Assembly (NCBI GenBank): GCA_013416795.1
Contig: RQSC01000033.1
Location: 49,309-89,787 of the forward strand
From: Prasinococcaceae sp. CCMP 1430
Lineage: Eukaryota > Plantae > Prasinodermophyta
DNA: 40,479 nt
Reading direction: 5' to 3'
Positions 12,594 through 17,656 of this stretch are shown in pieces. Position numbers and translations under genes: made by a program. The notes below the pieces were generated by a model. That model was not told the origin of the DNA. It saw nothing but the letters and a program-made list of their open reading frames with translations, and did no database searches. Position 1 is the first letter of the stretch, and every line of letters begins with the position of its first letter.

Positions 12594-13181
12594 ATGGGCG
12601 CCTCTGCTCTGCCTCCCGCCTCTGCGGCGCGCCACAGCGCGCGCGCGCGCGCGGGGCGTGTGGGGCGTGTGGGGCGGGCGGAGGGCGGCGGCGAGGGCGG
12701 ACCGGGCGGCAGCGCCGGGGGGGGAGACGATGACGTGGCCGCGGGCCGCGACGCCGTCGACGACGCCTTCGCTGCGGAGCTGCGCAGGCGCGGCGTCGCG
12801 TCGAGCGACCCGAGCGCGCGGCGCGACTTCATCGAGCGCCCCACGGAGGAGGACCCCGCCGAGTACGACGAGCGGGTGAACGGCCAGCTGGAGCGCACGC
12901 GCGCGATGCAGTCGGAGGGGCTCGAGGGCCTTCCGGGGCGCGCCAAGGAGCTGCTCACGCTGGGCCTGTTCTCGTCGCTCAACCCGCAGCTCTTGCTCCT
13001 CGGCGCCATCCTCACCGCCGCGACCATCGCCCTGCAGCTCGGGCTGGGCCCGGAGTTCATCCACGGCGGAGACCCGGAGATTTACGACATCCCGGACGCG
13101 GAGGAGACGCTCAACAAGTACACCAACCCGTACACCCTCCTCAACGAGCCCACGGTCGACCCAATGGTCCCTCTGTCGTGA
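12594..13181 (+). CDS. Green-lineage plastid membrane protein of unknown function
   Basis: Ala/Arg/Ser-rich transit-like N-terminus, motif GQLERTRAMQSEGLEGLPGRAKELLTLG, then a hydrophobic helix. TGTAA at 13232. Confidence 0.7.
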   Translation: MGASALPPASAARHSARARAGRVGRVGRAEGGGEGGPGGSAGGGDDDVAAGRDAVDDAFAAELRRRGVASSDPSARRDFIERPTEEDPAEYDERVNGQLERTRAMQSEGLEGLPGRAKELLTLGLFSSLNPQLLLLGAILTAATIALQLGLGPEFIHGGDPEIYDIPDAEETLNKYTNPYTLLNEPTVDPMVPLS

Positions 13182-13388: not shown

Positions 13389-15767
13389 TCACTTGGCGCC
13401 GCCCGTGTGCGCCGTGGCGACGGCCTCGCGCACGCTCGGATGGTCCTTGAGCATGCGCTCGGCCTCCTTCGGCGTGCCCACCACGCCGATGGCCAGCAGC
13501 GCGGCCGTGGGCACAACGCGCTCTTTCTTGACGGCGACAGAGATGTGCTCCTCGGCGGGCCGCGCCAGCAGCTCGGCGTCCGCGTGCCCCTCAAGCCCGT
13601 GAATGGCGCGCAACACTGCGTCCATGGCGAGATCCGTGTCGCACGCTGCGAGTTCCGACACGATGGCCGCCGCGCGGTGCAGCAGCTTGTCGTTGGACAC
13701 GCGGACGTCGATCATGCGATTGCCGTACACCTTGCCTATCAGCACGTGGGCGCCCGTGCTCACGACGTTGAGCGCCATCTTGAGCGCAACCTCCGCGAGC
13801 GAATCCACGCCCGGCAGCAGCGGCGCGGCAGCTGTGGAAGGCAGCGTGAGCGGGAGCACCAACTCGGCGGCCGCGCAAACGCCGGCAAGCGCCTCTGCCA
13901 CGAGCGGTGGCGTGACGACTTCGTCGTCGTCGTGCTGCGGGTCGCTAGCGCTGTCCGATGCCACGCACAGCATGCGGTCGTGCTGCGCCACCTCGGGCGT
14001 CACGACCGCCATTTTGAACTTTTGCTTTGCCTTGGCAGCCAACACCGCCTGCGAGCGAGCGCACGCGCAGGGCATTCAATGGCACGCGCGTCAGACACTG
14101 GAGCAAGAGATGAGCGAGATCGCTCACCCGCGCGCTCGCGCGTCACGAACCTTGAGCACGCCGGGTGCCACGTCGTCACTCGCAGGTAGGCGGCCGTTGC
14201 CGCCGCCAAGCACGACCAGGAGGTCGTCCTTGCCAAGCTTGGCAAGCCCGCTTGCGGCGACGACGAACGCCTCTGCCGCTACAACTGGCAGCGGCGACAG
14301 GGAGGCGGTGCGCGCGACCTCCAGACGGGGCTGCGCTCCTGGCTCCGCATCATCGTCCGTCGCCGCCCGACCGCCCACTTTCCCTGCGTCCCCCGCTGCC
14401 TCAGCCGCAGCGCTCGCGCTGGCGCCGTCGCCGCCGCCGAGCGATGCGCGGCGCTGCGGCATGCAACCGTCGATATCGCCCGCGACGCGTTCGCTGCCGT
14501 CCTCACTGCTGCGACCATCGTCTGCGCTGGCGCGCCCGCCCGCGCGCGCTGGCCGCCTGTGCGTGGCCGGGTGCCTGCGGATGGCGTCCCAGCCTCCGTC
14601 GAAGCTCGCGCGGAAGTCGCGCTCGTCCGCGCCGAAGGTGGGCACCTGCTCTGAAGCGTCGACCATTCCCACGAGCCCTGCACCGCCACCACCGAGGTAT
14701 ACCACGCTTCCACCGCCCGCACGTGCGGCGCCTGCGAGCGATACCAATTCTCCTAGCCGGTCTACATGCGAATACGCGGCAGCGGCGGCCCCATCGAAGG
14801 CAGCGAGGCACGCGCGCACGCCGCGCTCACAGGTGGCGAGCGCGGGCGTGGCATGCGCGCCAGCACCATCGCCACCTTCGCGTTCGCCGGGCGCGGAGCC
14901 CACCGGCGGCGAACCACAAAGCGGCGAGAACGCGGCCGCGCTGACTGCCGTGCCGAAGATGGCGTCAAGCAATATCTTCGTCGCCGTGCCGCCCTTGAGG
15001 CGCGTGGATCCCTGCACGGCTTCAGGGCCGACGACCGGCGTGAGCACGTGCGCGGGGGCCACCCTGCTACCCGCGGTCTCTGAGGCGCGCGCCTGCATCT
15101 CGAGGGCCAGGTCGTGGAAGCTGCGCCCCCACGTGGCAAGGCGCGCGCGTCGGGCGCGCTCGACCGGGTTGAAGCCGACGAGCACAGCCGCGTAGTTCGG
15201 CGCACGCAGCGCGTACTCGAGCTGCGCCCCCACGTATGTGGCTGACAGGCCACAGGTTATACCCACGTACAGCACGCGCCCGCCGCGCGTGCGCGCGAAC
15301 ACCGCCTTCTCGAGCGCCTGCAGGTCGGCGCGCGCGAGGGTGGCGTCGTCCTCGGCGAGCTCGCGCGCGCTGAAGAGCGCCTGCTCGCCGCCGGCGATCA
15401 GATAGTGGAAGCACGGAGCGAGGCGCGCACGCTCGAGCGCGCGATTGTAGGCGCGCGCGAGCGTCATTGCCAGCCGCCCAGACGTGCCAGCGCCTGCCAG
15501 CACCACGGCCGACTCCCGCCCCGAGCGCACCGCCTCAGCGGCGAGCTGCGCGACGCGCGCGGCCGCGGGCGCGCAGTCGGTGAGCGACGCGTGCTCGGCG
15601 TGGCCGCGGAAGAGCGCCGCGTCGTTTGCACGCATGCAGCGCACGATGCCCGCTGCGCCCACCGAGTCCAGGTTTGACGTCAGCGGGCTCGGCAGCTCCG
15701 TGAACGGACGCAGCACGTCCGCCGCGGCAGCCGCTGCCGCCGTCGCCGCGGCCTTCTCCACCGCCAT
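13389..15767 (-). CDS. GCKR: Glucokinase regulatory protein-like / MurQ-related tandem SIS-domain protein (758 aa, 2 exons)
   Basis: Exons 15767-14151 and 14048-13389. Motifs colinear with recalled vertebrate GKRP: TELPSPLTSNLD, LAGAGTSGRLA, YLIAGG, AEDD, GITCGLSATYV, LVGFNPV, GPEAVQGSTRLKGGTATKILL, DASEQVPTFGADERD, KMALNVVSTGAHVLIGKVYGNRMIDVRVSNDKL, PSVREAV. Confidence 0.88.
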
Positions 15768-16210
15768 GACCGCGCGCGAGCGCGCGGGCGGCCGCCCGCG
15801 CGCTGTGGCACGCGGCACGCGCGTCGCCGCGCGTCGCCGCGCGAGGCTCGGGTCCGCGCCTGGGCCAAAAAGATCTCGCGCCGCGCCGCGCCGCGCGAGC
15901 GAGCGCGCCGTACATTCAGTCGGAGCAAACACAAGCGAGAGGGGCCAAATATCCGACTGAGTCATTCGAGGTCCGCCCGGTGCCTGTCGCCGCGGAGAGC
16001 GAAAGCGCTCGTCAAAGCCAAAGCGCTTTTGATCGACGGTCACTCGGACAGGGTCCTCTCTCCGTCGGTTGCAGGAGAGGAGACTTGTTTCGTTCCTTCT
16101 CCCGCCATCCCATCCAACCTGCGGGCGGGGCGGGTGGAGCTCGGTCGGGCCCGGCCCGCGGGCGCCGCACGCGCTGGCCCGCCCCAACCGGTTGCAACCC
16201 CAACCCACCC

Positions 16211-16249
16211 AAACCCTAACCTAAACCCCAAACACGCTGTAACCCTAAC
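16211..16249. promoter_or_regulatory. Telo-box-like cluster (AAACCCTAA / AACCCTAA) in the divergent GCKR/SET promoter
   Basis: aaaccctaacctaaaccccaaa...taaccctaa. Related motifs at 3077, 5681, 10431, 34812 and 38106, all intergenic. Confidence 0.55.
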
Positions 16250-16459
16250 GGCGCCCCACGGCCGCGGCCACACCCAGCCACCAGCACGCCGCGGTTTTTT
16301 TTTTGCTTATTTATTTATTTATTTATTTTTACGCCGTGGGTCGCGCCCATCGTGTTGTGTGGGCCGGGCGAGCGCTGTCGGCCGCCGCCGCCGCAGGAAA
16401 GATGAAGATTCTCGGGCGGCGGCGGCGGCGGACGGCCACGTGCGGCTGCTCCATCGTTC

Positions 16460-17656
16460 ATGGAGGCGCCGCTCGCGCTCGCGACGCTGCTCGGTGGCTA
16501 CCCGGTTAAAAGCGTGGACGTCGCGGGCGCTGGCCGCTCGCTCGTGGCGGGGCGCGATCTGAGGCGGGGAGAAGTCGTTCTGGTGTCCCGCGCGGCGGGC
16601 GTGTCGCTGCGGGGCCCGAGGCGGGCGCATTGGTGCGCGCACTGCCTCGGCTGCTGCGGCAGCGAGAAGCTCCGGCTCGCGTGCGGCGGCTGTGGCGCTC
16701 GCTTTTGCAGCGCGGCCTGCGCGAGGGCAGCTGGAGTGCGCGGGGGGTCACACTGGCGAGGCGCTTGCGAGGCCAGGCAAGCAGCAGCCGCCGCCGCACC
16801 GCCGGGCGCGGGTGACACGCTCGCGGCGTTGCTCGTCGACCTGCTCGCGCGTCGCATGCGCGAGCTCGAGCCGGACGAGGTCGAAGACAGCGACGCGAGC
16901 GACAGCAGCAGCTCGGAGGGCGAGTCCGAGGGTGCGGGGGCAACTGGCGCGGATGGATGCGACAGCCAGGGTTTCGACGCACTCGCGCTGGCTGCGCCGC
17001 TCCCGAGCTCTCGCCACGTCGCCGACCTCGTCGTCCCCCCCACCGCCGACGCGGCCGATTTTGGCCAGGCAGAGCGCTTCGAAGTGGCGACGCATGTGGC
17101 GGCAACTACCGTGTGCGCACTACGCGACGCGGGAGGAGGTGCGGCTGCACTGCTGTCCGGCGGCGTCGACGCCCCCTCCGCGGCAGTACTGCTGCGTGGC
17201 GAGCTCTGCAACGCCTTCGGGCTGTGGGAACCGCGCCTGCCGTCCGAGTTCGAGGCCGACACCGCGGGGAAGGGGGTCTTCCCAGCGGCTGCGCTGCTCA
17301 ATCACAGCTGCGAGCCCAACACCTACCACGACGTGGTGCGCGCGCCCTTCGGCGGCGCCCTCGTCGTGCGCGCACTAGTCGATGTCGGGGCCGGGGAGCC
17401 GCTCACGCACGCCTACGGAGCGCTTCGCAGCGCGCGTGCGTCGGCCAGGCGACGCGCGCTCCGGCCGTGGTGCTTTTCCTGCAGCTGCGCGCGGTGCGAG
17501 CGCGATGACCCACGCGCGGACGCGCCCATGCTGGCCGCGCGCGTGTGCGTGTGCGGCAACGCGTGCCCGCAGCAGGCCAGCGCGGCGACGGACAAAGATG
17601 GCGGTGGCAATGGGGTGTGCGCGTGCGATCTCACCAACGCGTTGCCCATGGAGTAG
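16460..17656 (+). CDS. SET and MYND domain (SMYD-like) lysine methyltransferase
   Basis: Split SET (GRSLVAGRDLRRGEVV; GVFPAAALLNHSCEPN; GEPLTHAY), MYND zinc finger (CAHC...CGGC...FCSAAC...HWRGAC), post-SET FSCSCARC. Confidence 0.9.
   Translation: MEAPLALATLLGGYPVKSVDVAGAGRSLVAGRDLRRGEVVLVSRAAGVSLRGPRRAHWCAHCLGCCGSEKLRLACGGCGARFCSAACARAAGVRGGSHWRGACEARQAAAAAAPPGAGDTLAALLVDLLARRMRELEPDEVEDSDASDSSSSEGESEGAGATGADGCDSQGFDALALAAPLPSSRHVADLVVPPTADAADFGQAERFEVATHVAATTVCALRDAGGGAAALLSGGVDAPSAAVLLRGELCNAFGLWEPRLPSEFEADTAGKGVFPAAALLNHSCEPNTYHDVVRAPFGGALVVRALVDVGAGEPLTHAYGALRSARASARRRALRPWCFSCSCARCERDDPRADAPMLAARVCVCGNACPQQASAATDKDGGGNGVCACDLTNALPME

Follow-up and report, generated by a model that had tools for sequence, protein, structure and literature searches.

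What does a protein that resembles vertebrate glucokinase regulatory protein (GKRP) from end to end do in an alga: does it regulate a sugar kinase, or does it act as an enzyme of the bacterial MurQ type? The question is raised by a gene in a 40,479-nucleotide (nt) stretch of DNA from Prasinococcaceae sp. CCMP 1430 (contig RQSC01000033.1, positions 49,309 to 89,787), here called the window, whose own numbering is used for all coordinates below. We propose, at a probability of about 0.65, that this GKRP-like gene encodes a cytosolic, pseudo-dimeric N-acetylmuramate 6-phosphate (MurNAc-6-P) etherase, which would likely salvage N-acetylmuramate (MurNAc) from plastid peptidoglycan. The GKRP family, its MurQ origin and its ancestral etherase function have already been published, and the algal protein is not a new protein type; its significance rises only if the context of plastid-wall recycling is borne out.

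The coding region of the gene lies at 13389..15767 on the minus strand, from an ATG at 15765–15767 to a stop codon at 13389–13391. The initial annotation had taken 13389–15965 as one span; the frame is broken, however, by a 102-nt GT..AG intron (14049..14150, −; donor AAG/GTTCGT, acceptor CGCAG/GCG) that holds three in-frame stops (14124–14126, 14091–14093 and 14076–14078). Exon 1 (14151..15767, −) contributes 539 codons from the start methionine, which is Met67 when counted from an in-frame upstream ATG discussed below, and encodes the N-terminal core, the first SIS domain (SIS1), the linker and the first part of the second (SIS2), including a disordered insert. Exon 2 (13392..14048, −; 219 codons) encodes the remainder of SIS2 and the C-terminal lid. 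Intron removal joins ..APGVLK to AVLAAKAKQKF.., a junction that is gaplessly colinear with the protein P0002 of a relative (63–69% identical), which has no intron at that site and is encoded by one uninterrupted open reading frame (ORF) of 755 amino acids (aa) on a contig from the European Nucleotide Archive (ENA; L001). The translations of the two exons, which were searched separately, are identical to residues 1–539 (from Met67) and 540–758 of the 758-aa EukProt protein PRCOL_00004961-RA of Prasinoderma coloniale; the intron position is therefore the published one. The window gene is PRCOL_00004961 and is thus present in the published P. coloniale annotation; the supplements of the genome paper make no mention of it. 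Full-length analyses used PRCOL_00004961-RA (P0131). The window is accordingly P. coloniale DNA, in agreement with its GC content of 70%, against 69.8% for the published genome (PMC7455551); at third codon positions the GC content (GC3) reaches approximately 0.87 in the conserved coding parts of the gene. Purifying selection acts on the gene: of the 32 substitutions that separate its exons from those of a strain in the Tara ocean metagenomes, 22 are third-position changes.

The architecture of two SIS domains followed by a lid is real and far beyond chance. In a sequence search of the Protein Data Bank (PDB), exon 1 matched Xenopus GKRP (3w0l_B) with an E value of 2e-52 and human or rat GKRP with approximately 1e-42, and exon 2 matched human GKRP residues 479–607 (E 2e-19); MurQ chains matched the SIS2 segment of exon 1 only, at 5e-13 or weaker. 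On PRCOL_00004961-RA, Pfam found all three GKRP domains: GKRP_SIS_N (PF22645; residues 72–186, 15210..15554, −; E 5e-31 / 7.5e-31, 106.6 bits, cutoff 27), the start of GKRP_SIS_2 (PF22198; residues 332–394, 14586..14774, −; 28.6 bits on the full protein against a cutoff of 27) and the GKRP-like_C lid (PF20741; residues 649–749, 13419..13721, −; E 2.9e-25 / 1.6e-24, 86.7 bits, cutoff 27.7). The NCBIfam MurQ models (TIGR00274 / PRK05441) matched both exons, all below their cutoffs, with at best 110 bits against the family cutoff of 168 and 74 bits against the equivalog cutoff of 302. The algal protein, with two SIS domains in 758 aa, also departs from the single-SIS MurQ subunit of approximately 300 aa. 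An AlphaFold2 (AF2) model of the relative P0002, built from a 45-sequence alignment (predicted local distance difference test (pLDDT) 79.9, predicted template modelling score (pTM) 0.81), contains the full SIS2 fold and superposes on full-length GKRP structures with a template modelling (TM) score of 0.80, normalised to the target, and on MurQ over one half only. The description first given of this locus, a protein colinear with vertebrate GKRP that merited structural superposition, is borne out by both the sequence matches and the model, and PRCOL_00004961 belongs, by its domains and by the fold of its relative, to the GKRP-like family of eukaryotes, defined by two SIS domains plus a lid.

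The residues that make up a MurQ-type active site are divided between the two SIS domains. SIS1 keeps the phosphate loop GAGTSGR (15474..15494, −), equivalent to human GKRP G106–R112 with T109 and S110 retained and G107 replaced by Ala as in MurQ, together with AEDD (15345..15356, −), in which Glu139 (codon 15351–15353) aligns with human Glu153 and Escherichia coli MurQ Glu114; it has nothing at the DASE position. In SIS2, the loop is degenerate (GGGGAGLVG), the low-complexity insert has taken the place of the AED position, and the motif DASEQVPTFG (14631..14660, −) is kept, which places Glu373 (codon 14649–14651) at human Glu348 and MurQ Glu83, and a Pro at mammalian His351. The lid carries SNDKL (13683..13697, −) and then LHR, in which Asn, Lys660 (codon 13686–13688), Leu and Arg are the counterparts of human Asn512, Lys514, Leu515 and Arg518. 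In MurQ of E. coli MG1655, Glu83 lies within LDASECPPTYG and Glu114 within EGAEDS, and Hadi et al. (2008) reportedly identified these two glutamates as the catalytic residues of the enzyme. The motifs that the initial annotation had listed are all present where it placed them, including the conserved Lys of SNDKL, and DASEQVPTFG is indeed nearer to DASECPPTYG of E. coli MurQ than to DGVECIHTFG, which human GKRP has at this position.

The pattern G.GTSGR / ED / DA.E...T.G / N.KL holds almost without exception in 45 double-SIS proteins, among which the equivalents of MurQ Glu83 and Glu114 and of human T109, S110, N512, K514 and R518 do not vary. Those from Viridiplantae have DASEQ(V/L)PTFG in common, with Gln where Cys is usual; Cyanophora, the bacterial forms and most protists have DASECPPT(F/Y)G. 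We also followed in HMMER alignments the residues of human GKRP that are listed as ligands of fructose 1-phosphate (F1P) and fructose 6-phosphate (F6P) (PMC4109836). Retained in the alga are T109, S110, E153, G181, L182, S183, G256, R259, E348, N512, K514, L515 and R518; S179, V180 and S258 are changed conservatively to Thr, Cys and Thr, and at G107 (Ala) and H351 (Pro) the residues are of the MurQ type, so the site departs from the mammalian set of ligand residues. The residues of one composite MurQ-type site are thus intact, as they are across the whole GKRP-like family.

Given this arrangement, the protein would consist of two MurQ-type etherase units joined covalently into a pseudo-dimer, with only one of their two ancestral active sites left. 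SIS1 would give the phosphate loop GAGTSGR and the equivalent of MurQ Glu114, SIS2 would give the equivalent of MurQ Glu83 within DASEQVPTFG, and the lid would add an Asn/Lys/Arg cluster (SNDKL..R). The predicted reaction is the conversion of MurNAc-6-P to N-acetylglucosamine 6-phosphate (GlcNAc-6-P) and D-lactate, as for the members from Naegleria and lancelet. GKRP derives from a duplication of MurQ, the Naegleria GKRP-like protein has MurNAc-6-P etherase activity comparable to that of bacterial enzymes, and lancelet GKRP is an active etherase (bioRxiv 10.64898/2026.05.08.723886). That preprint credits Veiga-da-Cunha et al. (2009, Biochem J 423:323) with the description of eukaryotic GKRP-like etherases. 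Since the sequence in the alga is MurQ-like rather than vertebrate in type and the Naegleria and lancelet members are active, MurNAc-6-P etherase is its probable biochemical function. The initial annotation had set a fused pseudo-dimeric etherase beside a sugar-phosphate sensor or hexokinase regulator; the single composite site, with DASE..P rather than DGVECIH, argues for the former.

Word searches recovered double-SIS homologues from the green algae Mesotaenium, Mesostigma, Spirogloea, Cymbomonas, Chloropicon primus and C. roscoffensis, from the glaucophyte Cyanophora, from animals, from the protists Thecamonas, Paratrimastix and Gefionella, and, unexpectedly, from bacteria; the Chloropicon homologues are already annotated as ‘glucokinase regulatory protein’. 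Phylogenetic analysis with GKRP and MurQ, a check proposed in the initial annotation, placed the window protein inside the double-SIS group and MurQ outside it: in both a 70-row and a reduced 39-row tree, the double-SIS proteins separated from single-SIS MurQ with a Shimodaira–Hasegawa-like approximate likelihood ratio test (SH-aLRT) support of 100. In the 70-row tree the window protein paired with P0002 (100) within a modestly supported green-algal group (82), which joined Cyanophora at 83; support for the green group was 85–91 in the reduced tree, and across the trees (82–91) the groupmates of the window protein were Mesotaenium, Mesostigma, Spirogloea, Cymbomonas and Chloropicon. The bacterial double-SIS proteins formed a 16-row clade with a support of 98. 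A basal position for it was not rejected by an approximately unbiased (AU) test on the 39-row set under LG+G4 (p 0.61); the clade may be basal or nested, so these data do not allow the algal protein to be called an ancestral state of GKRP, a suggestion that was in any case already published. The duplication and fusion from which GKRP arose may have taken place in bacteria or in eukaryotes.

Among the bacterial double-SIS GKRP-like proteins are two of 570–574 aa that carry all three GKRP Pfam domains, P0067 (L003:7002-8714 and L004:8001-9713) and P0078 (L005:8001-9725). The P0067 gene, from a Planctomycetota metagenome-assembled genome, adjoins two NamZ genes (one with a beta-lactamase domain fusion), SpoIID, an M14 peptidase and an SSF symporter, and that of P0078 lies on a 611-kb bacterial contig beside an M23 peptidase, an MraY-type transferase and an alanine racemase.

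Where would an algal etherase find its substrate? Salvage of MurNAc from the plastid wall is most likely the most economical role. All ten core peptidoglycan synthesis enzymes are encoded by P. coloniale (PMC7455551), streptophyte algae and Cyanophora likewise encode all core enzymes, and Chloropicon is considered to possess a plastid wall. Apart from Cymbomonas, every named archaeplastid carrier of the GKRP-like gene comes from a lineage for which plastid peptidoglycan is reported or inferred, and no green or red alga lacking peptidoglycan appeared among the named homologue hits of our word-limited search. The bacterial double-SIS homologues sit in peptidoglycan-recycling clusters (NamZ, SpoIID, M14 peptidase). 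In the alga, the etherase would salvage MurNAc freed from plastid peptidoglycan, acting after an anhydro-MurNAc kinase, and its product would enter the hexosamine pool. An intact, selected etherase gene in an alga with the full set of wall-synthesis enzymes would offer a concrete enzyme for the question of plastid-wall sugar salvage; no description of plastid peptidoglycan recycling was found in the searchable literature.

More tentatively, and with rather less confidence than we place in the etherase function itself, the enzyme could be the committed step of a complete route of plastid-wall turnover and salvage in early-diverging green algae and glaucophytes. A lytic transglycosylase, NamZ and an amidase would free anhydro-MurNAc, AnmK would phosphorylate it, and the etherase would yield GlcNAc-6-P in the cytosol. 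If this is true, the gene should be retained within Archaeplastida only where the plastid wall is retained, plastid-wall recycling would be a real and genetically testable process, and the GKRP family would gain, beyond bacterivory and the sensing of glucose in the liver, a third physiological setting.

The same chemistry could draw on another source, the uptake of dissolved or prey-derived bacterial wall sugars as carbon and nitrogen, as proposed for bacterivorous protists. Family members occur in the plastid-less bacterivores Naegleria, Thecamonas, Paratrimastix and Gefionella, the algal protein has no plastid presequence, and Cymbomonas, which is among the carriers, is a phagotrophic green alga. 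However, the named archaeplastid carriers other than Cymbomonas are from the lineages with reported or inferred plastid peptidoglycan, with no peptidoglycan-less green or red alga among the named hits of the word-limited search, and no MurNAc transporter was identified. P. coloniale itself is a walled coccoid picoalga in which, to our knowledge, no phagotrophy has been reported. We consider an exogenous source unlikely for this alga.

Several observations weigh against the proposal of a cytosolic etherase that serves plastid-wall salvage. The GKRP_SIS_2 match is just above the Pfam cutoff and aligns profile positions 1–63 of 191, the remainder being interrupted by the insert. In human and rat GKRP the two Glu residues and the Lys are likewise present, but etherase activity is slight or absent (bioRxiv 10.64898/2026.05.08.723886), so the site residues look necessary but are insufficient evidence of activity. 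The green-lineage change from Cys to Gln directly follows the catalytic Glu, and the large disordered insert in SIS2 has no explanation. GKRP-like proteins are found, too, in eukaryotes that have no plastid peptidoglycan, and the homologue hits of the word-limited search do not include some of the plants and algae that have it; the link to the plastid wall is for these two reasons a correlative one.

The Cys-to-Gln change and the long insert count towards another reading, in which the protein is a non-catalytic sugar-phosphate binder that acts as a sensor or regulates hexokinase or glucokinase (GK) in the alga, much as vertebrate GKRP does. The sugar-phosphate site of GKRP is nearly fully conserved in the algal protein, and the vertebrate GKRPs demonstrate that the fold is able to become regulatory. 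However, GK inhibition has been reported only in jawed vertebrates (gnathostomes) (bioRxiv 10.64898/2026.05.08.723886); neither the lancelet protein nor ancestral chordate proteins act as GK inhibitors, and allostery is limited to some mammals. The GK-contact residues of human GKRP include Asp413 and Gln443 (PMC4109836), and the algal protein has no alignable counterpart of human residues 367–478: HMMER aligned the flanks, 283–366 and 479–607, and the contact region around Asp413, Gln443 and Pro446 was not found. At the His351 and Gly107 positions the residues are of the MurQ rather than the mammalian type. A role in inhibiting glucokinase is thus not expected for the algal protein, the sensor or regulator of the initial annotation is disfavoured, and we rate a non-catalytic function as quite improbable. 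No paper linking GKRP or the etherase to algae was found in the literature searched.

The cytosolic location in the proposed reading follows from the choice of start codon. In the window strain an in-frame ATG at 15963–15965 would add a 66-codon extension (15768..15965, −), which is most likely 5′ untranslated region or promoter rather than coding sequence. Five ocean-metagenome contigs (L006 and L008–L011; Tara/ENA) are 98.4–99.1% identical to window 15838–13200; their similarity ends at 15838, with nothing shared upstream, and in each of them a TGA lies in frame 27 codons ahead of the Met67 equivalent, with no ATG separating the two. Within the shared 71 nt upstream of Met67 there are ten substitutions and a frameshifting 1-nt indel, and GC3 is 0.60–0.63 in the first half of the extension against approximately 0.87 in the conserved coding parts. 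Met67 has G at both −3 and +4, whereas the upstream ATG is in a weak context (C at −3, A at +4). Translation most likely starts at Met67 (15767), leaving the extension untranslated. Counted from Met67, 21 residues precede the conserved TELPSPLT motif, which leaves no room for a transit peptide, and the PRCOL_00004961 protein is therefore probably cytosolic.

The initial annotation had noted that the extension might target an organelle; the ATG itself is present in this strain, is followed by no intervening stop and heads an extension of transit-peptide-like composition (13 Arg, 13 Ala and four acidic residues), and in L001, a more distant relative, the sole in-frame Met lies 76 residues ahead of the conserved core, but an etherase imported into plastid or mitochondrion is highly improbable given the in-frame TGA of the near-identical contigs, the loss of homology at 15838 with replacement of the upstream 577 nt, the substitutions, indel and low GC3 of the extension, the start of the published PRCOL_00004961 model at Met67 and the lack of an N-terminal extension in the Mesotaenium and Mesostigma homologues. 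An N-terminal transit peptide in P. coloniale was accordingly rejected after the comparison with the Tara strains. The species represented by L001 possibly has a longer N-terminus. Its gene has an intron in the N-terminal core, after ..LDAGGAEG (L001:1280-1480), and P. coloniale has none at the corresponding site (window 15620–15700), so introns have turned over between close relatives.

Upstream of the GKRP-like gene, the divergent promoter region that it shares with a SET-domain gene (16460–17656, +) is strain-specific over 577 nt (window 15839–16415). The Tara strain contig L008 has approximately 217 unrelated nt in its place, and the five independent metagenome contigs all begin 90–126 nt upstream of Met67. 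Within this strain-specific intergenic stretch, at 16195–16250 and 16295–16335 (−), lie degenerate telomere-like units of the TTAGGG / TTTAGGG type beside an (AAAT)n / poly-A tract.

The insert in SIS2 comprises 97 aa rich in Ala, Gly, Arg and Asp (14289..14579, −), longer than the approximately 60 aa first estimated for it and roughly 75 aa longer than in compact homologues. It is probably a weakly constrained, disordered surface loop. Inserts of differing length occupy the same SIS2 loop in Mesostigma, Mesotaenium and the relative P0002, and the equivalent stretch of the AF2 model of P0002 (350–477) has a pLDDT below 50. Compared with the Tara strain, the insert has eight substitutions in 291 nt and no indel. 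We also considered that the insert might be a hidden intron, which is unlikely: it is in frame, free of indels between strains and flanked by sequence conserved with the relative, and Mesostigma and Mesotaenium carry inserts at the same loop. The insert opens with a basic motif (window 14540–14579) that is conserved between P. coloniale and the relative (RRHPATHRRPAR versus RQHPPTHKKPRRRQRR) and could be a localisation or binding signal.

The remaining genes of the window are all ordinary eukaryotic genes (TPT, PQ-loop, SET, BRO1/ALIX, THUMP, ACAD, ALDH, LsmAD and C2), and no functional clustering around the GKRP-like gene was found within the window. Its divergent neighbour is the SET-domain gene; its convergent downstream neighbour is a 195-aa ORF (12594–13181, +) with an acidic N-terminal half, one hydrophobic stretch and no Pfam match.

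Four known systems place the algal protein. Bacterial MurQ (E. coli b2428; PDB 4lzj, 4s12 and 1nri) has the phosphate loop, the two motifs with the catalytic Glu residues and the Lys of the lid in common with it, and the reaction predicted for the alga is the MurQ reaction, MurNAc-6-P to GlcNAc-6-P and D-lactate; however, MurQ is a single-SIS homodimer of approximately 300-aa subunits with two equivalent sites, whereas the alga has two diverged, fused copies that each hold half of a catalytic set. Vertebrate GCKR (PDB 4bb9 and 3w0l) is colinear with it from end to end, shares its fold (at TM 0.80, as modelled for the close relative) and nearly all F1P/F6P contacts, but differs by His351 to Pro, Gly107 to Ala, DGVECIH to DASEQVP and a GK interface that is unalignable. 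The green-algal homologues from Chloropicon primus, C. roscoffensis, Mesostigma, Mesotaenium, Spirogloea and Cymbomonas belong to the same clade, share the DASEQ(V/L)PTFG signature and carry variable inserts at the same SIS2 loop as P. coloniale; they are only 31–42% identical to it, differ in insert length and N-terminus, and are known as annotations and models. The nearest functional counterparts are the GKRP-like proteins of Naegleria gruberi and lancelet, which have the same double-SIS plus lid architecture in approximately 600 residues and, as in the alga, a single composite MurQ-type site with DASE..P, and for which MurNAc-6-P etherase activity with no effect on glucokinase has been measured. 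The algal protein departs from them in its length of 758 aa, its 97-aa disordered SIS2 insert and smaller inserts, and the Gln in place of Cys after the catalytic Glu, and it comes from a phototroph that has plastid peptidoglycan, not from a bacterivore or an animal.

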